Shown here: positions 2,622 to 24,454 of the stretch, one piece after another
How the letters are laid out: each line of letters starts with the position of its first letter
How positions within the stretch are numbered: position 1 is the stretch's first letter
NCBI GenBank assembly: GCA_002269645.1
Contig: NIVC01002060.1
Location: 1 to 30,606, forward strand
Reading direction: 5' to 3'
Length of the DNA stretch: 30,606 nt
DNA from: Macrostomum lignano
Taxonomy: Eukaryota
Position numbers and translations under genes: made by a program
The notes under the pieces: generated by a model
Told to the model about the DNA's origin: nothing
The model's database searches: none
What the model saw: the letters and a program-made list of their open reading frames with translations, nothing else

Positions 2622-3025
2622 TCACTCCGCCCCAGACTGTCCGCCACTCAGGCGAGCCCGCATCACCGCCATGCAGCCGTAGTGGGTGACCTGGCGCGAC
2701 GGGAACCTGGCAAAGGCGCTGGCCCCGATCCGGTTCTGGCAGACGCTGCACCGGGTGCCCTCCTCGATGGCCACCCGGCCGGAGCGGACCCGGGCGAAGG
2801 CGGCCGCAGTCTGCAGCCGCTCGGCGTGGTACAGACCGCGGCGGGACTGCAGCAGGCGCTTCTCGGCCTCGAGCCGTTGCAGCGATGTCAGCAGATAGTC
2901 GGACAGGTCGGCCAGCGGGGTGGCCGGCGGCAGCAGCGGCAGGACTCGGACAGGCGGTATCTGGCCGGCCGGCGTTTCAATAATTGTAGCGCGCGCTGCG
3001 TCATTGGCGCCGGAGCGCGCGGCGC
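2622..3025 (-). CDS. VPS39: VPS39 exon 6 (C-terminal Vps39_2 / zinc-binding-like region), with apparent 1-nt deletion near 2970
   Basis: Acceptor TTTTGTAG|GCG at 3025. It reads APRAPAPMTQRALQLLKR, then after a -1 shift AGQIPPVRVLPLLP...CSVCQNRIGASAFARFPSRQVTHYGC...SGAE*. This exon is absent from the ORF track. Confidence 0.85.
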
Positions 3026-6000
3026 CTACAAAAGTAGTGCTTTATTTATAACAAACCAAGGCAGACTGTTTTAGGATTTCACTTTGAAAGATGAGCAATA
3101 CGGGGGCCGATTTCATAAAAAAGCTACAAGTGACCAGTGAAAAGTCGACAAATGACAAGTGTCAAGCGTCAACGATTTTGGTTTCATAAACATGGGTCCT
3201 TAATCGTGTTAAAAATAACTCAATTTTATGTCAATGGTTGAGACACAATATGAATTTAAGGATCTGTGTTTTAGACAGACTTGCTTTAAAGACGGCCTCT
3301 GCGTTCTTCTTGGACTTCAATACACAGCTTTAAACCACTTTAAAGCTCACTTTCAGGGAGGTTATTGACATAGATTTTATTTTGCGGGATTTATTCGATC
3401 ACTTTCCCGGACATATTGCAAGGATTATTGTATGTATCTAAATAAGCGAGCTAGCTTCTCTCTTCTCTTTCCTTCCTGACTCGAGAAATTTCTTAATGAA
3501 ATTTTGTCTATGGTAAGAATGTGGGGGCTTTGCCGCCACACCCCTAGCAGGGGCTTCGCCCCCACACCCCCACCCCCAACTTCAATCATAGACATACAAG
3601 TATGGCTCCGGGATTTATCTGAATACATGCCGCAAAATTAAAGTAGTTTAAATAAGATATTCTATGAGTTTTTCGGTCGGTATTTCACTTAAATCCCATA
3701 CCGACCTCAAACCCATAGAAAATATTATACTTAATAAAGCTAAAATTGTCACAGCGACTTGTCAAAAACACAAGACAAGAGGAAGTATTTTCACACAGAA
3801 GCATCCAGCTTAGTGCATGTCTATGGACGAAAACCCCGAAGAAGCGATAGTAATTTGTCAAATTTCGCTTGTCACTTGTAATTTGTCCGACAAGTGCTTT
3901 ATGAATAGCCCTACTCACATGCAATTTATAGGCCTCGGCAGGCAGGGGCGCCAGCAGCGCTTTGATCAGCTGACCGTAGACCTCGCCCTGAAGGCTGGCT
4001 AGCGAAGAATCGGCCGCATCGCCAGTTTCGGCAGTTGGCTGGCTGAGAATCTCTTCAGCCAGAGACTCAGCCTTCTCCGGCGACTCCAAATACTGAGCCA
4101 GAATAGTGAATGCCAGCTCGTACTGGCCCAGCCTGCTCAGCAGCAGGGCTCGCTCCTCCAGCATGTCGTTGTTAGGATAGCGGGCCAGCAGCTCCTGGGC
4201 GTTGTAGTGCCGGGAGCGGCGCAGGAAGGCCAGCAGTCGGGACCGGGCGCCGGCCACGGCTAAAGGCTCGGTCTGCTGCTCAAGCCTGAGCCGGTACTGG
4301 TTAGCCAGTCGGGTGTGCAGCGATTCGCTGGTGTCAGGCGGCTTACAGTGCAGTACGCAGTGCTCAAGATAGTCTGTGAGCAGTTGGGGAGCGCTAGACT
4401 CCAGGAAATTGGCCACCTCTATGCGTGGCAGCGCATTGTCACCGTCTGCTTGGCTCTCTGTGAAGATTCGCAAGCCCTCCTTGGGGTCGCGCTCGATTAT
4501 CCACCGACTGTAGCGGAATATGAGATCCTGGTAGGGCACGCCCAGTTCCTGCACGATGCAACAGTTTTGTGGGATGCAGGGTTAGGGGATGCGGTGTCAG
4601 GATAGGGGGCTGCAGTGTCAGGATAGGGGGCTGCAGTGTCAGGATAGGGGGCTGCAGTGTCAGGATAGGGGCTGCAGTGTCAGGATAGGGGGCTGCAGTG
4701 TCAGGATAGGGGCTGCAGTGTCAGGATAGGGGCTGCAGTGTCAGGATAGGGGCTGCAGTGTCAGGATAGGGGGCTGCAGTGTCAGGATAGGGGCTGCAGT
4801 GTCAGGATAGGGGGCTGCAGTGTCAGGATAGGGGCTGCAGTGTCAGGATAGGGGGCTGCAGTGTCAGGGTAGGGGCTGCAGTGTCAGGGTAGGGGCTGCA
4901 GTGACAGGATAGGGGGCTGCAGTGTCAGGATAGGGGGCTGCAGTGTCAGGATAGGGGGCTGCAGTGTCAGGATAGGGGGCTGCAGTGTCAGGATAGGGGG
5001 CTGCAGTGTCAGGATAGGGGCTGCAGTGTCAGGATAGGGGGCTGCAGTGTCAGGATAGGGGCTGCAGTGTCAGGATAGGGGGCTGCAGTGTCAGGGTAGG
5101 GGCTGCAGTGTCAGGGTAGGGGCTGCAGTGACAGGATAGGGGGCTGCAGTGTCAGGATAGGGGGCTGCAGTGTCAGGATAGGGGGCTGCAGTGTCAGGAT
5201 AGGGGGCTGCAGTGTCAGGATAGGGGGCTGCAGTGTCAGGATAGGGGCTGCAGTGTCAGGATAGGGGGCTGCAGTGTCAGGATAGGGGGCTGCAGTGTCA
5301 GGATAGGGGGCTGCAGTGTCAGGGTAGGGACTGCAGTGTCAGGGTAGGGGCTGCAGTGACAGGATAGGGGCTGCAGTGACAGGATAGGGGCTGCAGTGTC
5401 AGGATAGGGGCTGCAGTGTCAGGATAGGGGGCTGCAGTGTCAGGATAGGGGGCTGCAGTGTCAGGATAGGGGGCTGCAGTGTCAGGGTAGGGACTGCAGT
5501 GTCAGGATAGGGGGCTGCAGTGTCAGGATAGGGGGCTGCAGTGTCAGGATAGGGGGCTGCAGTGTCAGGATAGGGGGCTGCAGTGTCAGGGTAGGGACTG
5601 CAGTGTCAGGGTAGGGGCTGCAGTGACAGGATAGGGGCTGCAGTGACAGGATAGGGGCTGCAGTGTCAGGATAGGGGCTGCAGTGTCAGGATAGGGGGCT
5701 GCAGTGTCAGGATAGGGGGCTGCAGTGTCAGGATAGGGGGCTGCAGTGTCAGGATAGGGGGCTGCAGTGTCAGGGTAGGGGCTGCAGTGTCAGGATAGGG
5801 GGCTGCAGTGTCAGGATAGGGGGCTGCAGTGTCAGGATAGGGGCTGCAGTGTCAGGATAGGGGGCTGCAGTTTCAGGAAGTGGCTGCAGTGACAGGATAG
5901 GGAGCTGCAGTGACAGGATAGGGGGCTGCAGTGTCAGGATAGGGGGCTGCAGTGTCAGGATACGGGCTGCAGTGACAGGAAAAGTTGCTGCAGTGACAGG

Positions 6001-9000
6001 ATAGGGGCTGCAGTGACAGGAAAAGTTGCTGCAGTGACAGGAAGTGGCTGCAGTGACAGGATAGGGGCTGCAGTGTCAGGATAGGGGCTGCAGTGTCAGG
6101 GTAGGGGCTGCAGTGTCAGGATAGGGGCTGCAGTGTCAGGATAGGGGGCTGCAGTGTCAGGATAGGGGGCTGCAGTGTCAGGATAGGGGGCTGCAGTGTC
6201 AGGATAGGGGCTGCAGTGTCAGGATAGGGGCTGCAGTGTCAGGATAGGGGCTGCAGTGTCAGGATAGGGGGCTGCAGTGACAGGAAAAGTTGCTGCAGTG
6301 ACAGGATAGGGGGCTGCAGTGTCAGGATAGGGGGCTGCAGTGACAGGAAAAGTTGCTGCAGTGACAGGAAGTGGCTGCAGTGACAGGATAGGGGGCTGCA
6401 GTGTCAGGATAGGGGGCTGCAGTGACAGGAAAAGTTGCTGCAGTGACAGGAAGTGGCTGCAGTGACAGGATAGGGGGCTGCAGTGACAGGATAGGGGGCT
6501 GCAGTGACAGGATAGGGGGCTGCAGTGACAGGATAGGGGGCTGCAGTGACAGGATAGGTTAATGCGGTAATGTTAGACTAAGGTTTCAAGATAGAGTTCT
6601 ACAACAGTCAAACAGAAAAGCTAAATCCGATTTACCTGCAGGTACTGCACGCTGTCCTCAATATTGGAGATCTGAGAGCCGGGTTGCTGATAGTGCTCCA
6701 TGAGCAGTTTCAAACTTGACTCGTGATCGTTATTGTTTTTATAGAGCAGCAGCAGGCTTGACCACATTCGCTTCTGTTTCAGACAGGCTTCCGCCTCGCG
6801 CAGGTGACAATAGTTGGTGGTGCGAAGCAGGGAAGGCACCAGAGCGGGATTGCTCTCCAGGTAGCATTTCAGCAGTGAAGTGTCAACTAGCTGACGGAGC
6901 TTCTCTAAGTCAGCGGTGATTGGCTGTGGTGGAAGGCATCAGGTTGAAGCCGTTTGCACTTTCCAGTTCGCTTCGAAGCCAGACTCCAGATTGCCTACTC
7001 TCCTTTTAGCCACTGCTATCTACTCTCCCCCAGCCACTGCTATCTACTATTGACCAGCCACTGCTATCTACTATTGACCAGCCACTGCTATCTACTATTG
7101 ACCAGCCACTGCTATCTACTATTGACCAGCCACTGCTATCTACTATTGACCAGCCACTGCTATCTAATCTCCCCCCAGCCGCTGCTATCTACTCTTGACC
7201 AGCCGCTGCTATCTAATCTCCCCCCAGCCGCTGCTATCTACTATTGACCAGCCACTGCTATCTACTATTGACCAGCCACTGCTATCTACTATTGACCAGC
7301 CACTGCTATCTACTATTGACCAGCCACTGCTATCTACTATTGACCAGCCACTGCTATCTACTATTGACCAGCCACTGCTATCTACTATTGACCAGCCACT
7401 GCTATCTACTATTGACCAGCCACTGCTATCTAATCTCCCCCCAGCCGCTGCTATCTACTCTTGACCAGCCGCTGCTATCTAATCTCCCCCCAGCCGCTGC
7501 TATCTACTCTTGACCAGCCGCTGCTATCTACTCTCCCCCCAGCCACTGCTATCTACTCTCGACCAGCCACTGCTGTCTAATCTCCCCCAGCCGCTGCTAT
7601 CTAATCTCCCCCCAGCCGCTGCTATCTACTCTCGACCAGCCACTGCTGTCTAATCTCCCCCAGCCGCTGCTATCTAATCTCCCCCCAGCCGCTGCTATCT
7701 ACTCTCCCCCTTAGCCACTGCTATCTACTCCCCCTTAGCCACTGCTATCTACTCCCCCTTAGCCACTGCTATCTACTCCCCCTTAGCCACTGCTATCTAC
7801 TCCCCCTTAGCCACTGCTATCTACTCCCCCTTAGCCACTGCTATCTACTCCCCCTTAGCCACTGCTATCTACTCCCCCTTAGCCACTGCTATTTACTCCC
7901 CCTTAGCCACTGCTGTCTACTCTCCCCCCTTAGCCACTGCTGTCTACCCTCCCCCTTAGCCACTGCTGTCTACTCTCCCCTTAGCCACTGCTATCTTCTC
8001 CCCCTTAGCCACTGCTGTCTACTCTCCCCCCTTAGCCACTGCTGTCTACCCTCCCCCCTTAGCCACTGCTGTCTACTCTTCTCTCTTAGCCTTTGTAGCC
8101 CCTGAGAATCTCACACCTTAGAATCTTACTCATTAGAAAATCCGGCCCCTGAGAATCTCACCCCTGATTATTTCACTCGTGAGAATCTCAGCCCTGAGAC
8201 TCTCTTCTCCCTAAGAATCTCTCGAAGGGGGTAGCCTAGTGGTCTCTGATGTGCCAGCGGCCCAGGCTCGATTCCAAGTGCATTCACGTTAATTTGGGGC
8301 TAAATTGGAATCTCAGCTTGGCTCTGCTCGTGCAATTGCCGCCCTTCAGGGCCAACCCTTAAGGCACAGTAAAGTGTACATGCCTAATGATAAAGTCAGG
8401 GCCGCTGTGCACTCCTGTGTGAGAGTGTGCCTGTGAGAATGACTGCGTACGTATCCGTGCGCTTGTGTGCCTGCTCAGGGGAGTCGGCGGAACGGGCAGC
8501 AATGCCTCTCGCCGGTTGTGTGACAATGTCGCCGCCCACGCCCCCGGGACCCTCCCCAGGCGACCAGCAGCTCACCTGGTATTTGTCAACAGTGTAGAAC
8601 TGAATAGGAGGCGGCGGCGGCACCTTCTGAGCGATCTGAGCTAGCAGCTTCTTGCGCACCGAAGACAAATACTTGGCCAAAGCGAAGTAGCTCTCCAACA
8701 GGTCCTGGCCGCTGAACTCAGGCACCCGGCCGGGAAAGCTGACCCGATCCCGGAACTCCCTCGGCGCGATAGGGTACATGGCAACCACATTGGCCGGATC
8801 AATGCTCAGCAGCTCTAACAGGTCCAGCGACTCAGCGAACTGGCGCTGGCAGAACAGGTTGAAGGCGTAGTGGCACTTCACCAGCGAGACGTCAATGTCC
8901 CGCAGCTCGTCCGCCCTGTCCGGATCCGACTGGCCGATCTCGTGCAGCCGTAGGGCCAGCTCAAAATCGCGACGCTGTATGAGAACTTTTATCTGGGCTG

Positions 9001-12000
9001 ACAGCGGCCGCGGGTGCAGGCAGTAGACTGACTTGGCAGAGGCAGCGAACAACACGCCGCGGTGCTGGCTGACGCTGCGCAGGCTCTGCACGGGGGTGTG
9101 ACTCATTAAGGCTAGGGATGTGACTCATTAAGGCTAGGGATGTGACTCATTAAGGCTAGGGATGTGACTCATTAGAGCTGGGGATGTGACTCATTAGAGC
9201 TGGGGATGTGACTCATTAGAGCTAGAGGTGTGACTCATTAGAGCTAGGGTGTGACTTATTTGGGATTATTCATCAGGGATTAGAGCTAAGGGTGACTCAT
9301 TGGAGCTAAGGGTGACTCATTGGAGCTAAGGGTGACTCATTGGAGCTAGAGGTGACTTATTGAAGCTAAGGGTGACTCATTGGAGCTAAGGGTGACTCAT
9401 TGGAGCTAAGGGTGACTCATTGGAGCTAAGGGTGACTCATTGGAGCTAAGGGTGACTCATTGGAGCTAGAGGTGACTCATTGGAGCTAAGGGTGACCTGT
9501 TGAAGCTAAGGGTGACTCATTGGAGCTAAGGGTGACTCATTGGAGCTAAGGGTGACTCATTGGAGCTAGAGGTGACTTATTGGAGCTAAGAGTGACTTAT
9601 TGAAGCTAAGGGTGACTCATTGGAGCTAAGGGTGACTCATTAGAGCTAAGGGTGACTCATTGGAGCTAGAGGTGACCTGTTGAAGCTAAGGGTGACTCAT
9701 TGGAGCTAAGGGTGACTCATTGGAGCTAAGGGTGACTCATTGGAGCTAAGGGTGACTCATTGGAGCTAAGGGTGACTCATTGGAGCTAAGGGTGACTCAT
9801 TGGAGCTAAGGGTGACTCATTAGAGCTAGAGGTGACTCATTGGAGCTAAGGGTGACCTGTTGAAGCTAAGGGTGACTCATTGGAGCTAAGGGTGACTCAT
9901 TGGAGCTAAGGGTGACTCATTGGAGCTAAGGGTGACTCATTGGAGCTAGAGGTGACTCATTGGAGCTAAGGGTGACCTGTTGAAGCTAAGGGTGACTCAT
10001 TGGAGCTAAGGGTGACTCATTGGAGCTAAGGGTGACTCATTGGAGCTAAGGGTGACTCATTGGAGCTAGAGGTGACTCATTGGAGCTAAGGGTGACCTGT
10101 TGAAGCTAAGGGTGACTCATTGGAGCTAAGGGTGACTCATTGGAGCTAAGGGTGACTTATTGAAGCTAAGGGTGACTCATTGGAGCTAAGGTTGACTCAT
10201 TGGAGCTAAGGTGACTCATTGGAGCTAAGGGTGACTCATTGGAGCTAGAGGTGACTCATTGGAGCTAAGGGTGACCTGTTGAAGCTAAGGGTGACTCATT
10301 GGAGCTAAGGGTGACTCATTGGAGCTAAGGGTGACTTATTGGAGCTATGGGTGACTCATTGGAGCTAAGGGTGACTCATTGGAGCTAGAGGTGAGTTATT
10401 GGATCTAGGCATGACTGGAACTCAAGGCGAGAGTGGTGGAAGAGGCGATTATCAAGGAGCTGACCTTGCAAGAAAGTGCCTGACGCGTACACAGGCACTT
10501 TCTCTGCGATGTCAGGCACGCACATACCGACTCTTTGGGGGCTAACTCATTAAGTAATCTCAAACTCACCGGAATGTCCAAATTCTGTATCAGCGAAGTC
10601 CGCTGATCAACAGTTCGAACTTCAACAAAATCGGCACAGATGCCAATCAGAAACGGGGCCAAATACTGCAGCAGCAGAGGCTCCTTGGACCACTTGACCA
10701 TCAACGGCCCGTCGTTGCTTTTCTGACCGCGTCGCCAGCGGCCCTTCTCGTTGACAAACATAGTCTTGGAGTCCTTGGAGCAGAGCGCCAGAGTGTTGCG
10801 CTCAACTGGCGCCATGACCGGGCCCGTGGCCGGTGAGAAAGGAAACAGCTCGAGGATTTCTCCGTCATCAACGCGAATTCGAAAGTAGTCGGTTTTTAAT
10901 GCGACGCAAAGCGCTGTTGGGCCAATCCAGCTGACGGCTCTGGCCGCGGCGGGCAGGGCGAGTTCCTGGCGGAGCTCGGCGAACTGCGAGGCGCCAGGAG
11001 GCCAGTGGTAGAGCAGCAGCCGCTGCTTGACGTGAACGCACAGGCGCAAGTTGGATTGTCTGCCGCTTCCGCCTCCGGGATCTGCCGGGGTCTGGTGACA
11101 GCAGGCGAACAGGGAAGCGCCTCGGGTTCTGTCCAGCACGCTGAGAGCCTTCAACGTGTCCAGATTGTGCACCGAGACTGTGCCATCTGACAGGCTAATT
11201 AGCAAGCTGAGCGGTACCACAGCTTCCAGCTGCTGGATTGGCCGCTTGGAGAATGATTTGTGCGACTTCAGCAGCTGGATGGAGGGGCATTTGTCCAGGC
11301 CCGAGATGGAGTAGCTCAGCAGGTGGCCCTGTTCATGGCAGTGGGAGGAGCTGAATTATTAATGAGTCTGAGGCTCATGGGGAATTTCTCAGACTGTGAA
11401 GACCATACTCATAGGGAATTTCTCAGATTGCAAAGACAGAAAGGCTCATAGGGAATTGCCCAGGTTGTAAAGACACAAAGGCTTATGGGGAATCGTTCTG
11501 ATTGTAAAGACACAAAGGCTTATGGGGAATTGTCCAGGTTGTAAAGACACAAAGGCTCATGGGGAATTGCCCAGGTTGTAAAGACACAAAGGCTTATGGG
11601 GAATTGTCCAGGTTGCAAAGACACAAAGGCTCATGGGGAATTGCCCAGGTTGTAAAGACACAAAGGCTTATGGGGAATTGTCCAGGTTGTAAAGACACAA
11701 AGGCTCATGGGGAATTGCCCAGGTTGTAAAGACACAAAGGCTCATGGGGAATTGCCCAGGTTGTAAAGACACAAAGGCTTATGGGGAATTGTTCTGATTG
11801 TAAAGACACAAAGGCTTATGGGGAATTGCCCAGGTTGTAAAGACACAAAGGCTCATGGGGAATTGCCCAGGTTGTAAAGACACAAAGGCTTATGGGGAAT
11901 TGTTCTGATTGTAAAGACACAAAGGCTTATGGGGAATTGCCCAGGTTGTAAAGACACAAAGGCTTATGGGGAATTGCCCAGGTTGTAAAGACACAAAGGC

Positions 12001-13249
12001 TCATGGGGAATTGCCCAGGTTGTAAAGACACAAAGGCTTATGGGGAATTGCCCAGGTTGTAAAGACACAAAGGCTCATGGGGAATTGCCCAGGTTGTAAA
12101 GACACAAAGGCTCATGGGGAATTGCCCAGGTTGTAAAGACACAAAGGCTCATGGGGAATTGCCCAGGTTGTAAAGACACAAAGGCTTATGGGGAATTGTC
12201 CAGGTTGTAAAGACACAAAGGCTCATGGGGAATTGTCCAGGTTGTAAAGACACAAAGGCTCATGGGGAATTGCCCAGGTTGTAAAGACACAAAGGCTTAT
12301 GGGGAATTGTTCTGATTGTAAAGACACAAAGGCTTATGGGGAATTGCCCAGGTTGTAAAGACACAAAGGCTCATGGGGAATTGCCCAGGTTGTAAAGACA
12401 CAAAGGCTCATGGGGAATTGCCCAGGTTGTAAAGACACAAAGGCTCATGGGGAATTGCCCAGGTTGTAAAGACACAAAGGCTTATGGGGAATTGTCCAGG
12501 TTGTAAAGACACAAAGGCTCATGGGGAATTGTCCAGGTTGTAAAGACACAAAGGCTCATGGGGAATTGCCCAGGTTGTAAAGACACAAAGGCTTATGGGG
12601 AATTGTTCTGATTGTAAAGACACAAAGGCTTATGGGGAATTGTCCAGGTTGTAAAGACACAAAGGCTCATGGGGAATTGCCCAGGTTGTAAAGACACAAA
12701 GGCTTATGGGGAATTGTTCTGATTGTAAAGACACAAAGGCTTATGGGGAATTGCCCAGGTTGTAAAGACACAAAGGCTCATGGGGAATTGCCCAGGTTGT
12801 AAAGACACAAAGGCTCATGGGGAATTGCCCAGGTTGTAAAGACACAAAGGCTTATGGGGAATTGTTCTGATTGTAAAGACACAAAGGCTTATGGGGAATT
12901 GCCCAGGTTGTAAAGACACAAAGGCTCATGGGGAATTGCCCAGGTTGTAAAGACACAAAGGCTCATGGGGAATTGCCCAGGTTGTAAAGACACAAAGGCT
13001 CATGGGGAATTGCCCAGGTTGTAAAGACACAAAGGCTCATGGGGAATTGTCCAGGTTTTAAAAAAAGATACCGAGAACAGTGAGGATCAATCAATGTTAT
13101 TACAACAATGATCTCCATGGTCTCCAAGCGGAACTAACCTGATTGGTGCCAACCAGCAGAGTGGGTCCACAGTAGGTCAGACATTCAATCTGCAGCGGCA
13201 GGTTATGCAAGATGGTGACCGCCTCGAATGGCTCGTAGTTTTCCAACAT
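2622..13249 (-). CDS. VPS39: VPS39/Vam6 HOPS complex subunit, full model: complement(join(2622..3025,3919..4548,6636..6923,8576..9085,10570..11328,13139..13249)); 2702 nt, 1 nt short of 901 codons (frameshift near 2970)
   Basis: The spliced peptide follows metazoan VPS39 from end to end. N-terminal CNH region: YEPFEAVTILHNLPLQIECL, LLVGTNQGHLLSY, FSKRPIQQL. Middle: YAFNLFCQRQF, LVDTSLLKCYLESN, GLRIFTE, LEERALLLSRLGQYE. C-terminus: CSVCQNRIGASAFARFP...HYGC. All five junctions are GT-AG and phase 0. Confidence 0.95.
3103..3912. mobile_element. Possible PIF/Harbinger-like non-autonomous remnant(s) in VPS39 intron 5
   Basis: GGGGGCCGATTTCATAAA...TACAAGTGACCAGTGAAAAGTCGACAAAT at 3103-3150 resembles the reverse complement of 3855-3912 (AGGGCTATTCATAAA...TACAAGTGACAAGCGAAATTTGACAAAT); no clear TSD. 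Confidence 0.4.
3919..4548 (-). CDS. VPS39: VPS39 exon 5 (210 codons, clathrin heavy-chain-like repeat region, ELGVPY...AYKLH)
   Basis: Acceptor GTGCAG|GAA, donor CAT|GTGAGT at 3918; inside ORF 3685..4554. Confidence 0.92.
4590..6556. repeat. Minisatellite, 20-21-bp unit (GGATAGGGGGCTGCAGTGTCA), ~95 copies, filling VPS39 intron 4
   Basis: Tandem copies; variant units (GGAAAAGTTGCTGCAGTGACA, GGAAGTGGCTGCAGTGACA) cluster at 5870-6460. Confidence 0.97.
6636..6923 (-). CDS. VPS39: VPS39 exon 4 (96 codons, PITADLEKLRQLVDTSLLKCY...VQYLQ; Vps39_1 region)
   Basis: Acceptor CCACAG|CCA at 6923, donor CAG|GTAAAT at 6635; in frame with ORF 6621..6839. Confidence 0.9.
7005..8080. repeat. Minisatellite, 24-bp unit (GACCAGCCACTGCTATCTACTATT grading to CCCCCTTAGCCACTGCTATCTACT), in VPS39 intron 3
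   Basis: Tandem copies; they explain the TSHCYLLL and TIDQPLLS ORFs. Confidence 0.95.
8227..8280 (+). mobile_element. tRNA-derived SINE-head-like fragment (Pol III A and B boxes)
   Basis: GGGGG-TAGCCTAGTGG (A box, 8232-8242) and GGCTCGATTCC (B box with one mismatch, 8265-8275). The spacing is shorter than in a tRNA and no cloverleaf forms. Confidence 0.4.
8576..9085 (-). CDS. VPS39: VPS39 exon 3 (170 codons, SLRSVSQ...TVDKYQ)
   Basis: Acceptor GTGCAG|AGC, donor CAG|GTGAGC; contains DFELALRL and YAFNLFCQRQF. Confidence 0.92.
9095..10400. repeat. Minisatellite, 20-bp unit (GGGTGACTCATTGGAGCTAA), ~63 copies, in VPS39 intron 2
   Basis: Tandem copies; 22-bp variants occur at the 9100-9240 end. 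Confidence 0.97.
10570..11328 (-). CDS. VPS39: VPS39 exon 2 (253 codons, CNH domain, GHLLSY...SLIQNLDIP)
   Basis: Acceptor GAACAG|GGC at 11328, donor CCG|GTGAGT at 10569; extends ORF 10405..11220 by 36 in-frame codons. Confidence 0.92.
11410..13056. repeat. Minisatellite, 37-bp unit (GTAAAGACACAAAGGCTCATGGGGAATTGCCCAGGTT), ~43 copies, in VPS39 intron 1
   Basis: Tandem copies with recurring variants (CTCAT/CTTAT; CCCAGG/TCCAGG/TTCTGA). Confidence 0.97.
13139..13249 (-). CDS. VPS39: VPS39 coding exon 1 (37 codons, MLENYEPFEA...LLVGTNQ)
   Basis: ATG at 13249, donor CAG|GTTAGT at 13138; matches the VPS39 N-terminus as I recall it (human MHDAFEPVPILEKLPLQIDCL...LLVGTKQ). Confidence 0.9.
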
Positions 13250-13280
13250 CACATGGCTCTCTGATGAGGCGAGCCGCCAG

Positions 13281-13320
13281 CTGGAACATTTGCGAACAAA
13301 ATGAAATGTTTTCGTTTTTT
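13281..13320 (-). promoter_or_regulatory. 3' splice acceptor (candidate trans-splice site) 31 nt upstream of the VPS39 ATG
   Basis: The minus strand reads TTTCATTTTGTTCGCAAATGTTCCAG|CTGGCGG, with the AG at 13282-13281. Confidence 0.55.
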
Positions 13321-13409
13321 TACAAATGTTAATTTGACGCGGAATTTTAATGATAGACGACAAAGGAAGAATCAAAATAGTAATGTTCATGATAACTTTT
13401 CTGAATAAA

Positions 13410-13415
13410 TTTATT
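13410..13415 (-). terminator. AATAAA, candidate poly(A) signal of TBC1D20
   Basis: First sense-strand AATAAA I could find downstream of the TBC1D20 stop (visual scan of 13416-15119). Confidence 0.45.
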
Positions 13416-14049
13416 AATATTAAAACATTTATGAAGCAAGTAAAACAAGATTTAAGCACTTTACGAGAATTTGGTATAGATTAACTATTAGCAATCACAT
13501 TTATGCGTAAATTAAAGCAAAACAATACGCACGAAGTCTACGTACGGCATCAAGTGTGAAAGACCGCAATGCAATGCAAAAAAAAACAAAAATAGATAAT
13601 GAATAACAATGTACGCTGCATTTAACAAGCAGATAAAGGAAACCAATCACCCATGTGCACTGATTAAGCATTTGCAAACCAATTAACCGACAATGTATCT
13701 AGAAATATTGATACGAGTGTCGTATATTATGAATTATGGCTACTTGTGTTTACAATGACTGTTAAACTGTTGAAAAGATGAAATATTGCAATAATTAGAC
13801 AGCTCATCATTAGTATTCTTCTGATGGATCATCTGCGCCTGTTAAAACACTAGTCACCGAAATACTTGTACGAGCTAAGGCTAATTTAAAGATTGAAAAC
13901 ATTAACACACAGAACTTCTTAATCAACACACGTAACTCAAAGACACGAACTTTTAGCAACTAAAGTACACGGTTACAAATCACTTAACTAAAGATTCTAC
14001 ACTATAGAATCTCAACCCTAGTAGCTAAACTACACGGCTGGAAGCGAAC

Positions 14050-15058
14050 CTTAGCAACAAAAGTGCACTATTGAAAAAATCCTAGCAATAAAAGTACACC
14101 ATTGGAAGCACACCCTAGCAACTAAAGTACACTATTGGAAACCCACCCTAGCAACTAAATTACACCATTGGAAACACACCATAGCAACTAAAGTACACTA
14201 TTGGAAACCCACCCTAGCAACTAAAGTACACCATTAGAAACACACCCTAGCAACTAAAGTACACTATTGGAAACCCACCCTAGCAACTAAAGCACACTAT
14301 TGGAAACCCACCATAGCAACTAAAGTACACCATTGGAAACCCACCCTAGCAACTAAAGTACACCCTTGGAAACACACCCTAGCAACTAAAGTACACCATT
14401 GGAAACACACCATAGCAACTAAAGTACACTATTGGAAACCCACCCTAGCAACTAAAGTACACCATTGGAAACCCACCCTAGCAACTAAAGTACACCATTG
14501 GAAACCCACTCTAGCAACTAAAGTACACCATTGGAAACACACCATAGCAACTAAAGTACACCATTGGAAACACCTTAGCAACTAAAGTACACTATTGGAA
14601 ACCCACCCTAGCAACTAAAGCACACTATTGGAAACCCACCATATCAACTAAAGTACACTGTTGGAAACACACCCTAGCAACTAAATTACACTATTGGAAA
14701 CCCACCCTAGCAACTAACGTACAGCATTGGAAACCCACTCTAGCAACTAAAGTACACTATTGGAAACTCACTCTTGCAACTAAAGTACACCATTGGAAGC
14801 CCACTCTAGCAACTAAAGTACACTATAGGAAACTCACCCTTACAACTAAAGTACACCATTGGAAACACACCCTAGCAACTAAAGTACACTATTGGAAACC
14901 CACCCTAGCAACTAAAGTACACTATTGGAAACCCACCCTAGCAACTAAAGTACACTATAGGAAACACACCCTAGCAACTAAAGTACACTATTGGAAACTC
15001 ACCCTTGCAACTAAATTACACCATTGGAAACTCACTCTTGCAACTAAAGTACACTATT
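14050..15058. repeat. Minisatellite, 33-bp unit (CCCTAGCAACTAAAGTACACTATTGGAAACCCA), ~30 copies, between the TBC1D20 stop and the VPS39 start
   Basis: Tandem copies, degenerate toward 13950. Confidence 0.95.
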
Positions 15059-15119
15059 AGCAAAGTGGACGCCTACATCATAAAACATCAAGCAAGCTCC
15101 ATGTATTAAAGTGCGCAAG

Positions 15120-15470
15120 TCAACTCAGCAGTTGGGCCCACAGCACAGCCAGCAGAGCCACCAGCACAGCCAGCAGAATCAGCAGAGCCCCTCTCGATCG
15201 AAGCAGATGCGGCAGGCTGACCTGCGCTTTCACCATCAGCAGCCCCAATCTCGACCGAGGCTTCCGCTGTCCGCCCGGCTGCTCAAACAGTTTGAGCTCG
15301 TCAAACCAGGACGGGGACTGGACAGTGTCCGGCGGGTGCAGGATAAACAGGCGACAGGCCTCGGATATGACCGTCTCCAATTGGATGGCGCCGCTATTGG
15401 GAATGTTGGCCAGGCAAGAGTGCAGCACAGCAAAATCAATGTCTTCCGGAGGCAGAGACAGCAGACGATC
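15120..15470 (-). CDS. TBC1D20: TBC1D20 exon 4 (116 codons plus stop, C-terminal transmembrane anchor)
   Basis: Acceptor TTTCAG|GAT after a 74-nt intron; ends GALLILLAVLVALLAVLWAQLLS*. Confidence 0.88.
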   Translation of the reverse strand, partial: DRLLSLPPEDIDFAVLHSCLANIPNSGAIQLETVISEACRLFILHPPDTVQSPSWFDELKLFEQPGGQRKPRSRLGLLMVKAQVSLPHLLRSRGALLILLAVLVALLAVLWAQLLS

Positions 15471-18400
15471 CTGAAATTTAAACCGATTTGTACTACTTAG
15501 CAGTAGCAACATCAAAGATATCTTTTACCTGCAATTCGATTCACCTGCTTGTGCAGAACCAAAGCAGCACTAAAGTACAGCGGCATCAGCGGATGACTGG
15601 CCAAAAAGAAATCGTACAGCCGCAGGATTGCGTCAAGGTCGTCCAGCACGTGACCAAACCAAGTGATCACCCAGGCAACTGAGAATGCCGGCGGAACTTC
15701 GTGCTTTTCAATGAGATCGGCTATTCGTTTGCCGCGCGGGTCCTGAGGGGGGGGGCGTTTGGAGTGCGGTGGGTTGCAGCAATGCTATGGCCAATGAGGT
15801 ACCAACATAACGAGCTGCACTCTAAGACCCTCGTGACTGCCCCCATGAGATCCCTCAATACTCGGACTGTCTCTCACTGGTCTCCCTGAGACTGCCCCCT
15901 TGAGACCTCTTTGAGACTGCCCCCTTGAGACCTCTTTGAGACTGCCCCCTTGAGACCTCTTTGAGACTGCCCCCTTGAGACCTCTTTGAGACTGCCCCCT
16001 TGAGACCTCTTTGAGACTGCCCCCTTGAGACCTCTTTGAGACTGCCCCCTTGAGACCTCTTTGAGACTGCCCCCTTGAGACCTCTTTAAGACTGCCCCCT
16101 GAGATCTCTTTAAGACTGCCCCCTGAGACCTCTTTAAGACTGCCCCCTGAGACCTCTTTAAGACTGCCCCCTGAGACCTCTTTAAGACTGCCCCCTGAGA
16201 TCTCTTTAAGACTGCCCCCTGAGACCTCTTTAAGACTGCCCCCTGAGACCTCTTTAAGACTGCCCCCTGAGACCTCTTTAAGACTGCCCCCTGAGACCTC
16301 TTTAAGACTGCCCCCTGAGACCTCCCTAATACTGCCCCCTGAGAACTCCTTGAGACTGACTGCCCCCTGAGACCTCCCTAATACTGCCCCCTGAGACCTC
16401 CCTAATACTGCCCCCTGAGACCTCCCTGAGACTGCCTCTCCCTCTGACCTGAGACCCCTGAGACCAGAGCGCCCCGAGTCCAGTTAAAACAAATAGAAAC
16501 AGTCTAAAAAATTCACCTTGCTCAAAAGCAGCGGCACCAGTTTCAAAAGCTCAGTAGTAACAGCCATGCTCGGGTACAGGTGCTCACGCAAGTGACTTTT
16601 AGAGACGGCCTCTACAACATTATAGGCGTGCCGACTGTCCAGCACAAGCAGGAATGTAATAACAATATCGTGATAGCCCTGATAATAGTGCAGGTGAGAA
16701 TTCGCGTGCAACACTCGCATAATGGTCTCCACTAGCTGGTCCTGGTAGGACATTCGCACCTGCTCGTCCATGCCGGGCGGGAATCGCTTCAGGGAGCGCT
16801 CAACGTCTAGCACAACCTGCGAGTAGATTGGAAGACGGACGGTTGGCTTTGCAAGTTCATCTACTGATAAGTAGAAATTTTAGAGTGTGACGCGAAAAGC
16901 TTGCATGGCGGGAAAAACCCTGACGCAACGGCTTCGGCGACATTGCCCAACAACCAGCGCTATACAAAGCACATACAGACACGTTTACCGATGAGCTGCT
17001 CTGCCCCTTAGTGTAGGTCTTAATAGGCCAGTTGATTAAGTCTAGAGGGATGGAAACCGGTACTGCCAGTATGACCTGGCCTGGTTCAATTTCACTTTTA
17101 ACTAGCTGACTGACAGGAGACGGTTGAGGGGAAGGAGATGGAAGTGGGGAGACTGGGGGAGAGAGTGGGAGAGGGAAAGTGGGTGGGAGAGTGGGAGAGG
17201 GAGAGTGGGTGGGAGAGTTAGAGAGCAGCTAAGAAAGGCAGGCAGAGATATAGACAGCGAGGGAGAGGGGGAGATGGATTGTAGAACAAAGCAACTGGGA
17301 GGGTGAGGAGAGGGAGAGTGGGTGGGAGAGTGAGAGAGGGAGAGTGGGTGGGAGAGTGAGAGAGGGAGAGTGGGTGGGAGAGTGAGAGGGAGAGTGGGTG
17401 GGAGAGTGAGAGAGGGAGAGTGAGAGTTGGAGAGTGGGTGGGAGAGTGGGAGAGGGAGAGTGGGTGGGAGAGTGAGAGAGGGAGAGTGGGTGGGAGAGTG
17501 AGAGAGGGAGAGTGGGTGGGAGAGTTAGAGAGCAGCTAAGAAAGGCAGGCAGAGATATAGACAGCGAGGGAGAGGGGGAGATGGATTGTAGAACAAAGCA
17601 ACTGGGAGGGTGAGGAGAGGGAGAGTGGGTGGGAGAGTGGGAGAGGGAGAGTGGGTGGGAGAGTGAGAGAGGGAGAGTGGGTGGGAGAGTGAGAGGGAGA
17701 GTGGGTGGGAGAGTGAGAGAGGGAGAGTGAGAGTTGGAGAGTGGGTGGGAGAGTGGGAGAGGGAGAGTGGGTGGGAGAGTGAGAGAGGGAGAGTGGGTGG
17801 GAGAGTGAGAGAGGGAGAGTGGGTGGGAGAGTGAGAGAGGGAGAGTGGGTGGGAGAGTGGGAGAGGGAGAGTGGGTGGGAGAGTGAGAGAGGGAGAGTGG
17901 GTGGGAGAGTGAGAGAGGGAGAGTGGGTGGGAGAGTGGGAGAGGGAGAGTGGGTGGGAGAGTGGGAGAGGGAGAGTGGGTGGGAGAGTTAGAGAGGGAGA
18001 GTGGGTGGGAGAGTGAGAGGGAGAGTGGGTGGGAGAGTGAGAGAGGGAGAGTGGGTGGGAGAGTGAGAGGGAGAGTGGGTGGGAGAGTGAGAGAGGGAGA
18101 GTGGGTGGGAGAGTTAGAGAGCAGTTAAGGAAGGCAGGCAGAGATATAGACAGCGAGGGAGAGGGGGAGATGGATTGTAGAACAAAGCAACTGGGAGGGT
18201 GAGGAGAGGGAGAGAGGACTCAGAAGGATTCAAAATTGGGATAAGCATGGAGGGAGCTGTCAGTAAAGCAGTAATTAAAGCAACAGGTAAATCAGGCTAA
18301 ACAAGGAGATCGCAGTCGGATTGGCGCACCTGATTATAATCCGGATGCCGTTTCAACTGTTTCTGAGTCGGCGTCGGCGGCTCCGGCTTGTCGGCGACGC

Positions 18401-18641
18401 GGGTAAGCAGCGGCCAGACGAGTCGGCGAAGCTCGTTGGACGCCAGGCCGTAGCGCTCGATGGCCAGGCAGCGGAGGGCGTCCACATCCGGGGAGCCGGC
18501 CGGCGATGTCGCCGAGAGCGCCTCGCGAACTCGCTCGGCTTTCCGACGTCGGAACGTCGCTAGCAAGGCCGCCGCCGAACTGGCTTCGTCGGTTGCGTCG
18601 GCAGACGATGCCGAGGCCGTGGCGGCGGCGTGAGCAGGCAT
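15120..18641 (-). CDS. TBC1D20: TBC1 domain family member 20 (Rab GAP): complement(join(15120..15470,15545..15742,16517..16816,18330..18641)), 386 aa
   Basis: ELRRLVWP, the arginine finger VVLDVERSLKRFPPG, the glutamine finger LHYYQGYHDIVITFLLV and WVITWFGHVL...RLYDFFLASHPLMPLYF are all present, with a C-terminal hydrophobic tail anchor. The spliced CDS is 1161 nt and in frame; all junctions are GT-AG, phase 0. Confidence 0.95.
15545..15742 (-). CDS. TBC1D20: TBC1D20 exon 3 (66 codons, DPRGKRIAD...LVLHKQ)
   Basis: Acceptor CCCTCAG|GAC, donor CAG|GTGAAT. Absent from the ORF track but translates to AWVITWFGHVLDDLDAILRLYDFFLASHPLMPLYF. Confidence 0.92.
15885..16460. repeat. Minisatellite, 24-25-bp unit (GAGACTGCCCCCTTGAGACCTCTTT), ~23 copies, in TBC1D20 intron 2
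   Basis: Tandem copies. Confidence 0.95.
16517..16816 (-). CDS. TBC1D20: TBC1D20 exon 2 (100 codons; catalytic DxxR and YxQ motifs)
   Basis: Acceptor TCGCAG|GTT, donor AAG|GTGAAT. Confidence 0.93.
17145..18215. repeat. G-rich minisatellite, ~26-bp unit (GGGAGAGTGGGTGGGAGAGTGAGAGA), with three interspersed copies of a ~90-bp module, in TBC1D20 intron 1
   Basis: Tandem copies; the module GAGAGCAGCTAAGAAAGGCAGGCAGAGATATAGACAGCG...GCAACTGGGAGGGTGAGG starts at ~17221, ~17528 and ~18117. Confidence 0.93.
18330..18641 (-). CDS. TBC1D20: TBC1D20 exon 1 (104 codons)
   Basis: ATG at 18641 with an in-frame upstream TGA; donor CAG|GTGCGC at 18329. Confidence 0.9.
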
Positions 18642-18695
18642 GACTGGGCTCGGCGGTCAGGCTTGGCTTAGCAGTGAAGATTTATGGCTGCTGCT

Positions 18696-18723
18696 GTTGC
18701 CTTGGTAACGCTGATGACGCAAT
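18696..18723. promoter_or_regulatory. RFX X-box (GTTGCCTTGGTAAC) plus CRE/CEBP-hybrid motif (TGACGCAAT), 55-82 bp upstream of the TBC1D20 ATG
   Basis: Exact fit to GTNRCC-N2-RGYAAC at 18696-18709; TGACGCAAT at 18715-18723. Confidence 0.55.
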
Positions 18724-18799
18724 AGACAGTTGCTGAGGGCATTAAGTGAATTTTTTACCTCAAGAGCCAAATCAAGAATCTTGATTGCGAGCCTGATCA

Positions 18800-19283
18800 G
18801 AGTGGAAAGGAAAGGGGGTTGAAGATGAGAGATAAGAGAATAGATTGGATGAGATAAAATATAGAGGATAAAAGGAGAGAAGAGTGGAGAGAGAAAGGGG
18901 AGAGCGGAGAGAGTGAGGAGAGATGAGACAAGAGGGGGAAGAGAAGAGGGGAGTTGAGAGAAGGGGTAGATAGAAGAGGAGAGAGAGGTGAAAGAAAGGG
19001 GAGAGAGAAGAGAGGGGAGAGAGGTGAAAGAAGAGGGGAGAGAGGTGAAAGAAGAGGGGGAGAGAGGTGAAAGAAGAGGGGAGAGAGGTGAAAGAAGAGG
19101 GGGAGAGAAGAGAGAAGAGAGAAGAGGGGAGAGAGAAGAGAGGGGAGACCGGAGAAAGAGGGGAGAGAGAAGAGAGAAGATGGGAGAGAGAAGAGGGGAG
19201 AGAGTAGAGGGGAGAGAGGTGAGAGAAGAGGGGAGAGAGAAGAGGGGAGAGGTGAGTCGACCGAGAGGCAGAGAGAGAGAGAA

Positions 19284-19341
<58 letters not shown>
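18800..19341. repeat. Polypurine (A/G) low-complexity tract ending in a perfect (GA)n microsatellite, just upstream of TBC1D20
   Basis: Almost exclusively A/G on the + strand; pure GA dinucleotide run at ~19295-19341. Confidence 0.95.
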
Positions 19342-22804: not shown

Positions 22805-24386
22805 TCAAGCGTCTTTATCCCCGCCATCAATGTACAGCGGCACCGCCAATGGGGGAAACGGCAACGTTGGCGGCACCGCCTGATCCTCGACAGTCGGCAC
22901 TCCGGCCGCGGAATCGTCGCCAACGCCAACAACGTCGTCAATGGTTGGCAAAAGCGACATCGGCAATTCGTCGGCGTCGTCAGCTTCGAAACCGAACGAG
23001 GCTGGCGCGGTTGACACGACAGAGGCGGTCGCCGCCACCGTTGCAGCAGCAGTTGACTGCAAATTGGAAGACTGCGATGCGGCGCTGACGGCGGCAGCCG
23101 AGGCGAACACGGCTTCAACAGAGAGTCCGCTGGCCTCCAGTCCGCGCACGCTCTCAAAAATGTCGTCCATGGAATTCTGGCGCTGAAGGCCTCCGCCTCC
23201 GACAGTGCCGCCAGCCGGCTGGCGCTGATGATCGATCAAAGCGGCGGCGAGGTTCAGGCCGCCGAGCGGCGACACGGCGATGGCATCCAGGGCCGCTGCC
23301 GCCGTGGAGCTGACCAGCGCCTCCTGCAGCGGTCGCGGCGGACGGCCCTTGGCCGAAGCTCCGGCCAACTCCGACACATCATATCCAGACGAGGCCCCAT
23401 CGTCGTCATTGTCGCTGGCGCCGCTGCCATCTTTCAAGTCGGAGTCCCGATCTCCTTCTTCGTCGTCGCTGCCTTCTGACGAGGCCGACGATTCGTACAT
23501 GGCTTTGCAGCGGCCGCGGGGTCGCTTCAACACTCGCCAGTGCTTGTTGCTGCGGCTATCATCCTCGTCATTCGATCTTTGCCGGCTCCGTTTTGTACTT
23601 TTCTGCTTTTTTCGCTTTCGCCGTTCCGGCAGATCCGACAGTCCGGAAGTGGCCGATGCGGACGCCGTGGCGGCGGCGGCGGCGAAGGCTGCCAGGCTGG
23701 ACAGCGGCGGCGGGCGGCGGGCGGAGCCGCGAACAGGCGCAGGTGATTCTTCATTGTCCTCCTCCCCGTCGCATTCGAATATCCGCTTGCCCCTATGCCT
23801 GCCGACTGCGCCAGCTGCCGAAGCTCCGTTGCTAACTGCAGAGTCCAGCTTCCCCGATGCTTCATCTGAATTTTCATCCTCGTCGTCCTCTTCGCCTTCG
23901 AAGATTCGTTTGCCCCGAGACGCTCGGCCGCGTCGGGCCGGCCAGGCTGCACAGTTGGCGCCGTTGATGCTGCACTGTGCCTCTTCTGCTTCTTCATCAT
24001 CATCATCATCCTCTTCTTCATCATCATCTTGGTCCTCGTCTTCCTCGCTGTCTGGCTCGGCGCTCCGCTTCAGGTAGGAATAGTACAGCTTCTTGTGCGC
24101 CACCGAGCGGTAGCCTTCGCCGAGGTCACCGCTGCCGAACCGTCTGGACAGGAGGTCGCCAGCCGCCGCCGCCACCTCCTCGTCGGCTACGTCGCCGTCC
24201 GGTATCGCCGCGTCAGTCGGCGAAGCTTCACCCTCATTGTCGTCGTCATTGCCAGCCTCGTCTGGGTCGTCGTCGAGATCCTCCGAGTTGATGCTGGACG
24301 GCGTGTCCTCGAAGATTCGCTTCTGCCGGATCGCCGGGTCGCGCCGCGCCTGATCGACTGGCGCCAATGGCGGCGGCAGATCCGGC

Positions 24387-24417
<31 letters not shown>

Positions 24418-24454
24418 GCGAGTTCTCGTCGCCTTCGCCGTCAGCTGCCGACAT
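22805..24454 (-). CDS. 549-aa acidic, Pro/Ala-rich, probably disordered and nuclear protein of unknown family; either a complete single-exon CDS or the last exon of a longer gene
   Basis: 1650-nt GC-rich ORF in an AT-rich context. It has poly-Pro and poly-Asp/Glu runs, a basic NLS-like stretch RRKRKKQKSTKRSR, KRIFE three times and one FGF. A splice acceptor (CCAACCTTCCAG|) lies 53 nt upstream of the ATG. Confidence 0.8.

Follow-up and report, generated by a model that had tools for sequence, protein, structure and literature searches.

The closest described systems to the gene pair considered here are the spliced-leader (SL) operons of its own host, the flatworm Macrostomum lignano. A single 35-nt SL is trans-spliced onto the transcripts of about 30% of genes in this species, and about 15% of genes lie in operons (PMC5730564; PMC8629364); around 10,000 genes have been assigned to SL operons. 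Most operons (75%) consist of two genes, 18% begin with a gene that is not trans-spliced and, once repeats are discounted, trans-spliced genes most often lie about 100 bp apart, repeats being known to inflate operon spacers (PMC5730564; PMC8629364). About 60% of genes trans-spliced to the SL are found outside operons (PMC8629364). The published trans-acceptor motif is [T/C]TNCAG. Operons were defined as immediate neighbours on the same strand, uninterrupted by a gene of the opposite strand, with SL trans-splicing of the downstream gene and a repeat-adjusted distance of less than 1 kb (Ustyantsev & Berezikov 2021, PMC8629364). TBONE, the pipeline behind the annotation, uses peaks of SL-containing reads as the points at which to cut transcripts, and the annotation authors use.g1,.g2 for genes within one transcriptional unit. 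They themselves describe such units as imperfect in repeat-rich regions when built from RNA-seq (PMC8629364). The Mlig_3_7 assembly was polished with Pilon using RNA-seq.

Two further systems invite comparison. The SL2-type operons of Caenorhabditis elegans resemble the present locus in the co-orientation of their genes and in a gap of about 100 nt, here predicted, between poly(A) site and acceptor; the coupling of 3′-end formation to trans-splicing would be a further likeness. They differ in that M. lignano has no specialised SL2 and uses one SL at all sites according to the literature, on which basis the pair would not be an SL2-type operon, and also in spacing, the coding sequences lying 1.87 kb apart here because a 1-kb minisatellite sits in what would be a 3′UTR. 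In parasitic flatworms, as in the polycistrons of Schistosoma mansoni and the UbCRBP–enolase operon of trematodes, a single SL likewise resolves the downstream gene and chimeric gene models are seen at such loci; such models are held to indicate a polycistronic pre-mRNA, and the median intercistronic distance in S. mansoni is about 99 bp (2025 parasitic-flatworm operon study). The spacer described here is far more repeat-laden than those of the parasitic species.

The window analysed is the entire contig NIVC01002060.1 of M. lignano (assembly Mlig_3_7; 30,606 nt). An earlier note, made from the sequence alone, had proposed that genes for TBC1D20 and VPS39 form a two-gene operon in this contig; all of its coordinates were correct on rechecking, and the SL machinery that it presupposed is documented for this organism, a flatworm with one SL and many operons. 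We consider it probable, at roughly three chances in four, that the pair is an SL-resolved operon of M. lignano. It shares with the described operons of this species the organism itself, the single 35-nt SL, the acceptor motif, a downstream gene that is very probably trans-spliced, a repeat-inflated spacer and an adjusted distance below 1 kb (PMC5730564; PMC8629364), and no structural difference from them was seen. No paper that we found discusses the pair, and a literature look-up of gene identifiers returned neither gene, only Mlig022540.g1, g7 and g8, which belong to a trans-spliced C1QBP-like gene.

Gene content of the locus

The features on which the argument depends are as follows.

2622..13249, minus strand: VPS39 (BOX15_Mlig025532g2, PAA61201.1 'partial'), own model identical to PAA61201.1
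13250..13280, minus strand: genomic 5′UTR of VPS39, 31 nt, from reading of the sequence
13281..13286, minus strand: TTCCAG, very probable SL acceptor of VPS39, junction 13281/13280, from the motif and the 5′-partial CDS
13282..14014, minus strand: unique AT-rich spacer, 733 nt, 31% GC, from composition and motif scan
13355..13391, minus strand: predicted cleavage CA (13391–13390) and U/GU-rich element (13379–13355, TATTTTGATTCTTCCTTTGTCGTCT), from reading of the sequence
13410..13415, minus strand: AATAAA, predicted TBC1D20 poly(A) signal, conserved in four of four copies
14015..15058, minus strand: 33-bp minisatellite, 31.8 copies, 1044 nt (TRF), presumed TBC1D20 3′UTR or intergenic
15120..18641, minus strand: TBC1D20 (BOX15_Mlig025532g1, PAA61202.1), spliced model identical to the GenBank protein
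22805..24454, minus strand: single-exon gene, 549 aa, acidic and of low complexity, possible further upstream member of the unit

Our model of the upstream gene has four CDS exons (18641–18330, 16816–16517, 15742–15545 and 15470–15120), ends with a TGA stop at 15122–15120 on the minus strand and yields a product of 386 aa that matches PAA61202.1 exactly. This product has a Pfam RabGAP-TBC domain (6e-19) and matches the human TBC1D20 structures 4HLQ/4HL4 (1.5e-71). In that alignment the two catalytic fingers, DxxR and YxQ, correspond (segments LDVERSL and HYYQGYHDIV); the catalytic residues are intact, and a hydrophobic tail, GALLILLAVLVALLAVLWAQLLS, forms the C-terminal membrane anchor. Judged by its TBC domain, both fingers and the anchor, the gene is a true TBC1D20 orthologue, as the earlier note had named it. 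The only promoter-type motifs found 5′ of it are CATAAA at 18686 and CCAAT at 18848; in a motif scan the nearest TATA box lay at 19519, leaving about 880 nt upstream of the ATG without one, and no [T/C]TNCAG acceptor was found 5′ of the ATG.

The downstream gene has six exons on the minus strand (13280–13139, 11328–10570, 9085–8576, 6923–6636, 4548–3919 and 3025–2622), with an ATG at 13249–13247 and a protein beginning MLENYEPF. The locus encodes CNH, Vps39_1, Clathrin/TPR and zf-Vps39_C domains (Pfam), and its top named matches are vam6/Vps39-like proteins (33–36% identity over 97% of the length). On its domains and relatives it is a true VPS39 orthologue, the closest named relatives being Vps39 and not TGFBRAP1/Vps3, which agrees with the identity first given to it. 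In this contig a G is missing at about 2966, and the resulting frameshift places the zinc finger out of frame, the annotated product ending at 2890 after 821 aa.

The interval between the genes

Both are minus-strand genes, and 1870 nt separate the TBC1D20 stop from the VPS39 ATG, the 1044-nt minisatellite accounting for much of this distance, so that the co-orientation, 1.87-kb spacing and roughly 1 kb of minisatellite originally described are borne out. Genomic copies of the locus differ in repeat number, copy L002 having 39.8 repeats and copy L003 having 15.5. Four cryptic GTRAGT donors (15035, 15002, 14837 and 14771) lie within the array, one of them the GTGAGT that the earlier note had pointed to at about 15035. 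The unique spacer that follows (13282–14014) is 96–99% identical to three other genomic copies.

The AATAAA at 13415–13410 is not only the first in the sense orientation, as had been claimed, it is the sole one on the minus strand between the TBC1D20 stop and the VPS39 ATG; the sole ATTAAA lies at 13351–13346. A CA dinucleotide at 13391–13390 falls 19–20 nt past the hexamer and precedes the U/GU-rich element, a standard metazoan layout from which the TBC1D20 poly(A) site is predicted to lie just past the AATAAA, giving a predicted poly(A)-to-acceptor distance of 109 nt. Motif scanning found zero occurrences of TATAWAW in the 1.84-kb gap, which also contained no credible plus-strand ORF, Rfam match or tRNA; the GenBank gene table has no entry between the genes, and Rfam and tRNA scans of the whole window were empty. 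The spacer would be either the remainder of the TBC1D20 3′UTR together with the intercistronic region, or an outron of VPS39 carrying its own promoter.

The probable trans-splice acceptor of VPS39

A clean acceptor, TTCCAG, ends at 13281, where it had been placed originally; it follows the AATAAA by 129 nt and precedes the VPS39 ATG by 31 nt, and the [T/C]TNCAG motif occurs at only two sites in the 1.84-kb gap, 14043 and 13286–13281. The GenBank CDS of VPS39 is 5′-partial and starts at 13279, and at the equivalent base in copies L002, L003 and L004 (four of four). PAA61201.1 opens with WRLASSESHVM at this position although the reading frame is open upstream to about 13460, so the VPS39 transcript model must begin at 13281–13279, directly at the AG of the acceptor.

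The acceptor itself reads TTCCAG in NIVC01002060.1 and L003, TTCATG in L002 and TTCCTG in L004. Over about 915 nt, L002 and L004 have no private substitutions other than these junction changes, both of which are directed toward the CATG that ends the SL (CATG in L002, CTG in L004) and which sit on different haplotype backgrounds. Since the assembly was Pilon-polished with RNA-seq, we read them as a probable polishing trace of SL-joined reads, in which bases of the SL end overwrote the acceptor AG. Taken with the motif and the four 5′-partial CDS models, these two SL-like overwrites form strong but indirect evidence for SL trans-splicing of VPS39, which very probably takes place exactly at TTCCAG, onto 13280, as first suggested. 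No Logan contigs of M. lignano carrying an SL–VPS39 junction were found, and a homologue search with the VPS39 N-terminus gave three matches only.

The short genomic 5′UTR contains a one-codon uORF (ATG TGA, 13254–13249) that overlaps the true ATG. The M. lignano SL ends in AUG, a further difference from C. elegans SL2-type operons, and on VPS39 this terminal AUG would start an out-of-frame uORF of 26 codons running across the VPS39 start.

Probable organisation of the pair as one unit

The two genes carry one unit prefix in each of two copies, being Mlig025532g1 and g2 on NIVC01002060.1 and Mlig022540g3 and g4 in L002, and the published annotation names as one transcriptional unit the pair that the earlier note had proposed as such. 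The distance from stop to acceptor is 1838 nt; once the 1044 nt of the TRF array are taken off it comes to no more than 794 nt, even if the 3′UTR had zero length, and it therefore falls under the 1-kb threshold of the M. lignano operon rule whatever the length of the 3′UTR. Adjacency, shared strand and repeat-adjusted distance are thus as that rule describes, and the remaining element, SL trans-splicing of the downstream gene, is indicated indirectly by the acceptor evidence.

On the older ML2 assembly, gene predictors joined the pair into a single model in at least five cases (P0013, P0014, P0016, P0006 and P0277). We considered these ML2/UniProt models as diverged paralogous loci, and rejected them as independent evidence because the alignments show identical stretches broken by frameshift noise. 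The four genomic copies, at 96–99% identity, likewise give no evolutionary support.

What speaks for a single precursor from one upstream promoter is the common unit prefix and the fused ML2 models; we infer that the pair is transcribed polycistronically, without an internal promoter. RNA polymerase II would start 5′ of TBC1D20, or may do so further upstream at the 549-aa gene, and read through both genes. The TBC1D20 mRNA would be cleaved and polyadenylated about 20 nt past the AATAAA, giving a 3′UTR of about 1.7 kb with the minisatellite inside it, and some 109 nt downstream the 35-nt SL (ending TTGCATG) would be trans-spliced at the TTCCAG junction, providing VPS39 with a cap and a 66-nt leader.

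Alternative readings

Trans-splicing at 13281/13280 is also compatible with a promoter of VPS39's own in the 733-nt spacer. The spacer would in that case serve as an outron, the genes would be plain neighbours or a 'hybrid' operon with an internal promoter, and the common transcriptional unit could stem from overlap between the TBC1D20 3′UTR and the VPS39 outron. Most trans-spliced genes of M. lignano are monocistronic, RNA-seq gives imperfect transcriptional units where repeats abound (PMC8629364), and the spacer, being AT-rich, has the length to accommodate a promoter, possibly a TATA-less one. We nevertheless judge this arrangement unlikely: the spacer has no TATAWAW, the spacing fits the operon mode of about 100 nt, both genes carry a common unit name in two copies, and the only canonical TBC1D20 poly(A) signal lies 129 nt before the acceptor, so that any VPS39 promoter would sit inside the TBC1D20 3′UTR. 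Cis-splicing of the first VPS39 exon to an upstream exon, for example from the GTGAGT donor in the minisatellite, would give a conventional 5′ exon or a TBC1D20–VPS39 fusion transcript. The four donors, the fused ML2 models and the frequent use of common acceptors by cis- and trans-splicing in flatworms (2025 parasitic-flatworm operon study) would accommodate it, but the 5′-partial CDS halts exactly at the acceptor in four copies despite the open frame, and therefore no upstream exon is joined in the transcript model; the junction variants resemble the SL and not any upstream exon, and the ML2 fusions are error-ridden predictions. Such cis-splicing is accordingly extremely improbable.

An operon of the pair could also be part of a unit of more than two genes, in which the co-oriented 549-aa gene (24454–22805), and possibly more, is transcribed with both and TBC1D20 is itself trans-spliced. 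VPS39 is g3 of Mlig021694 in L003 and g4 of Mlig022540, in which TBC1D20 is g3 and the trans-spliced C1QBP-like gene occupies g1, g7 and g8. In L003 and L008, too, the 549-aa gene is followed by TBC1D20 and then VPS39, and past the AATAAA signals of the 549-aa gene (21446–21271) most of the stretch leading to TBC1D20 consists of tandem repeat with an 822-nt indel, which brings the repeat-adjusted distance below 1 kb. Set against this, TBC1D20 is g1 on NIVC01002060.1 and the 549-aa gene therefore belongs to another unit there, g-numbering across clustered units is not strictly positional, no [T/C]TNCAG precedes the TBC1D20 ATG, and L003 and L008 have no SL-like overwrites 5′ of TBC1D20. The search for SL-like overwrites or acceptor motifs 5′ of both TBC1D20 and the 549-aa gene found none, and the 549-aa product has no Pfam match. 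A C1QBP-like gene upstream in the window was sought and rejected, three-frame translation of 24455–30606 (30–41% GC) showing no long open frames by eye. A larger unit is thus a tentative, rather doubtful possibility; of the two-gene unit first claimed, the naming of the pair in one unit stands, and the restriction to two genes is put in question by the g3/g4 numbering elsewhere.

Proposed functional linkage, and conservation

TBC1D20 is an ER-anchored GAP for Rab1/Rab2 and VPS39 a Rab2-binding subunit of HOPS, both acting in ER/Golgi-to-lysosome and autophagy traffic. The earlier note had seen in this a co-expression module of a Rab2 off-switch and a Rab2 effector, and selection for linkage, fixing the ratio of Rab1/Rab2 GAP to HOPS subunit, would suit their common route and the intact catalytic residues of TBC1D20. 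The module found no support: in the three other spiralians examined, Lingula (brachiopod), Lineus (nemertean) and Owenia (annelid), the gene 5′ of VPS39 is not a TBC gene. Neither gene appears in the text and examined supplements of the 2025 parasitic-flatworm operon-conservation study, according to which flatworm operons are generally poorly conserved. All M. lignano copies are recent duplicates and, since about 15% of genes lie in operons, some trafficking genes should be paired by chance. Selected linkage is hence very unlikely; were it real, conservation would be expected across Macrostomum species or other flatworms.

Meaning of the locus

The TBC1D20–VPS39 pair, though real, is an ordinary representative of an operon class that is known and abundant, since operons hold about 15% of the genes and public annotation already treats the pair as one unit; with some 10,000 genes assigned to operons, the operon in itself carries little weight. 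It does provide a clean worked example of a 1-kb minisatellite inside an operon whose core of about 110 nt from poly(A) site to acceptor would be undisturbed. A by-product may matter more, namely that in two of the four copies examined RNA-seq polishing seems to have replaced the acceptor AG with SL bases. If this is general, acceptor sites and motif statistics would be corrupted genome-wide, and the overwriting would at the same time supply a read-free marker of trans-splice sites.

The two genes and their surroundings

TBC1D20 (BOX15_Mlig025532g1) lies upstream of VPS39 (BOX15_Mlig025532g2), and a further gene precedes them; the features are as follows.

22805-24454, minus strand: single-exon gene for a 549-aa protein
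18641-18330, 16816-16517, 15742-15545, 15470-15120, minus strand: the four coding exons of TBC1D20 (spliced model)
13280-13139, 11328-10570, 9085-8576, 6923-6636, 4548-3919, 3025-2622, minus strand: the six exons of VPS39 (model)

The spliced TBC1D20 model, ending in a TGA stop codon (15122-15120, minus strand), encodes 386 aa identical to GenBank PAA61202.1. This product contains a RabGAP-TBC domain (6e-19), aligns with crystal structures of human TBC1D20 (1.5e-71), retains both catalytic fingers (LDVERSL and HYYQGY) and has a hydrophobic anchor at its C-terminus. The earlier note had credited the gene with recognisable promoter motifs, which we could not confirm, finding only CATAAA at 18686 and CCAAT at 18848 upstream. 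An 822-nt CT/GA-rich insertion at 18750-19571 precedes the TBC1D20 ATG by 108 nt and is absent in L003 (NIVC01001660.1), one of three other genomic copies of the locus, the others being L002 (NIVC01003474.1) and L004 (NIVC01004076.1); the sequence directly 5' of TBC1D20 thus tolerates large indels.

Translation of the VPS39 exons from base 13279 reproduces the 821 aa of GenBank PAA61201.1 exactly, with the ATG at 13249-13247 on the minus strand. The gene encodes CNH, Vps39_1, clathrin-repeat/TPR and Vps39 zinc-finger domains, and the closest named relatives of its product are vam6/Vps39-like proteins (33-36% identity over 97% of the length), which together identify it as VPS39 and not TGFBRAP1. 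Compared with L003, one G is missing from the last exon at ~2966, and the resulting frame shift changes LLKRRPGQIPP (L003) to LLKRRP/ARYRL in the window, so that the annotated product of 821 aa is without the zinc finger; the cause would be an indel of the assembly or else a duplicate that is broken.

The 549-aa protein is acidic and of low complexity with no Pfam match, and upstream of its gene are a TTCCAG acceptor (~24510) and TATATAAA (~24705). In a duplicate contig, L008, its annotated product has just 228 aa; this contig, the next one in the assembly, repeats 14 kb of the window (16473-30606) at 99.4% identity (NIVC01002061.1:1-14089). The L008 copy terminates within the minisatellite of TBC1D20 intron 2, and the overlap suggests contig ends that are redundant or haplotypic and were broken where tandem repeats lie.

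The gap between TBC1D20 and VPS39

The TBC1D20 stop and the VPS39 ATG are 1870 nt apart, of which 14015-15058 is occupied by 31.8 copies of a 33-bp minisatellite with GTGAGT-type donors at 15035, 15002, 14837 and 14771; the gap also includes a unique spacer of 733 nt (31% GC). The sole sense AATAAA (13415-13410) is followed by a CA (+19/20, positions 13391-13390) and then by a U-rich stretch (13379-13355), which reads as a textbook poly(A) layout and predicts an intercistronic region of 109 nt; the sole ATTAAA lies at 13351-13346. A TTCCAG ends at 13281, 129 nt past the AATAAA and 31 nt ahead of the VPS39 ATG. Rechecked on the sequence, all coordinates in the earlier note proved correct.

The minisatellite varies between copies of the locus, with 39.8 units in L002 (1297-2604) and 15.5 in L003 (8781-9291), while the 129-nt core from AATAAA to acceptor is constant in length except for one base. 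Each intron of both genes also has a minisatellite of its own, and so does the presumed 3'UTR of each of the three genes. Besides the TTCCAG ending at 13281, the gap contains a single further match to the trans-acceptor motif [T/C]TNCAG, CTTCCAG at 14043-14038, in the final, degenerate unit of the minisatellite. With the GTRAGT donors of the early units (14771-15035) this acceptor could define a 3'UTR intron excising most of the minisatellite, or it could be an alternative SL site.

Probable trans-splicing of VPS39

Three independent lines (the CDS boundary, the motif and SL-like bases in the assembly) agree that VPS39 is very probably trans-spliced at TTCCAG/13280, the acceptor picked out by the earlier note. 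PAA61201.1 is flagged as partial and its first residues, WRLASSESHVM, start at base 13279 although the frame is open upstream as far as ~13460, which places the start of the transcript model at 13281-13279, at the AG. The CDS begins at the equivalent base in L002, L003 and L004. According to the M. lignano annotation authors, TBONE set gene boundaries by cutting at SL-read peaks and T-fill 3'-end peaks. TTCCAG also matches the published M. lignano trans-acceptor motif [T/C]TNCAG (PMC8629364), of which the 1.84-kb gap holds no more than two occurrences.

The SL-like bases lie at the acceptor itself.

Window 13281-13283; L002:3333-3336; L004:~1584-1586: variant acceptor bases, CCAG changed to CATG (L002) and CCTG (L004)

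The window and L003 carry TTCCAG as acceptor, while L002 has TTCATG and L004 has TTCCTG, variants that match the 3' end of the M. lignano SL (...TTGCATG). Over ~915 aligned bases L004 differs from the window by a single substitution, A-to-T at 13282, and the only private substitutions of L002 are the same change and C-to-A at 13283. Position 13282 groups the window with L003 against L002 and L004, in conflict with SNPs at 13645 and 13524, which group the window with L004 against L002 and L003, indicating that the acceptor change arose twice, on haplotype backgrounds that differ. The M. lignano assembly Mlig_3_7 was polished by Pilon with RNA-seq mapped by STAR, and the simplest reading would be that the genomic AG was replaced by SL-bearing reads across the junction.

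In L003 the gene downstream of VPS39, EMC3, has the acceptor ACATTCCAG/CTGGCACCATG (L003:28010-28029), sharing the core TTCCAG/CTGGC with that of VPS39; its annotated CDS start (28042) is 15 nt past the evident ATG (28027). With the SL joined at 13280, ahead of 13249-13280, its terminal AUG is out of the VPS39 frame and opens a 26-codon uORF overlapping the real start, which a one-codon uORF (AUG UGA) overlaps too; ribosomes would have to use leaky scanning or reinitiation to translate VPS39.

Operon status and alternative readings

M. lignano does possess the SL machinery on which the operon proposal depends, with one SL, ~30% of genes trans-spliced and ~15% in operons. Two-gene operons make up 75% of the total, and in 18% the first gene is not trans-spliced; repeat-adjusted spacing has a mode of ~100 bp, and operon spacers are inflated by repeats. 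The published rule (PMC8629364) defines operons as adjacent genes on the same strand, the downstream one trans-spliced, at a repeat-adjusted distance of <1 kb; TBC1D20 and VPS39 fall under it, as subtracting 1044 nt of tandem repeat from the 1838 nt between stop and acceptor leaves at most 794 nt. Their locus tags share a prefix (Mlig025532g1/g2 in the window, Mlig022540g3/g4 in L002), which under the authors' naming convention means that the 2017 annotation derives both from one assembled transcriptional unit. On ML2, an earlier assembly, gene predictors merged the pair into a single model in at least five cases, and such chimeric models are a sign of polycistronic pre-mRNA according to a 2025 flatworm study. 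We consider the operon architecture a sound inference, and put the probability that the two genes are co-transcribed as an SL operon at about 0.75.

Around 60% of trans-spliced M. lignano genes are monocistronic, and the 733-nt spacer, in which a search for TATAWAW found none, could still house a TATA-less promoter serving VPS39 alone, although we regard this as unlikely. Cis-splicing to an upstream exon is far less credible still, because the VPS39 CDS is 5'-partial in four copies. A transcription unit larger than two genes is possible, if doubtful, given the tag numbering, in which VPS39 is g3 of Mlig021694 (L003) or g4 of Mlig022540 (L002), the latter a unit whose g1, g7 and g8 are a trans-spliced C1QBP-like gene, and given that the window, L003 and L008 all have the co-oriented 549-aa gene (24454-22805) ahead of TBC1D20. 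Against this, TBC1D20 is g1 in the window contig, and a search upstream of its ATG for an acceptor motif and an SL trace found neither.

Functional reading

TBC1D20 is a Rab1/Rab2 GAP and Vps39 connects HOPS to Rab2, from which the earlier note had drawn a module co-expressing a Rab2 off-switch and effector. This story is speculation; we see no sign of selected linkage. The four M. lignano copies are recent duplicates (96-99% identity) and carry no evolutionary weight for it; in Lingula, Lineus and Owenia, the three genomes checked for the adjacency, the upstream neighbour of VPS39 is something other than a TBC gene. Neither gene was found in the text or examined supplements of a study on operon conservation among 24 parasitic flatworms, in which operons are described as poorly conserved. 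Given that operons hold 15% of the genes, trafficking genes are expected to be paired at times by chance.

Implications

The TBC1D20-VPS39 unit is an ordinary case within a class that is abundant and already described, and it is implied by the public annotation. Among the by-products, the most useful is that SL bases appear to have overwritten a trans-splice acceptor in a reference genome polished with RNA-seq. If this reading is true, the overwritten AG would be a physical trace of SL-VPS39 molecules, and such SL 'bleed-through' could damage many acceptor sites in Mlig_3_7.
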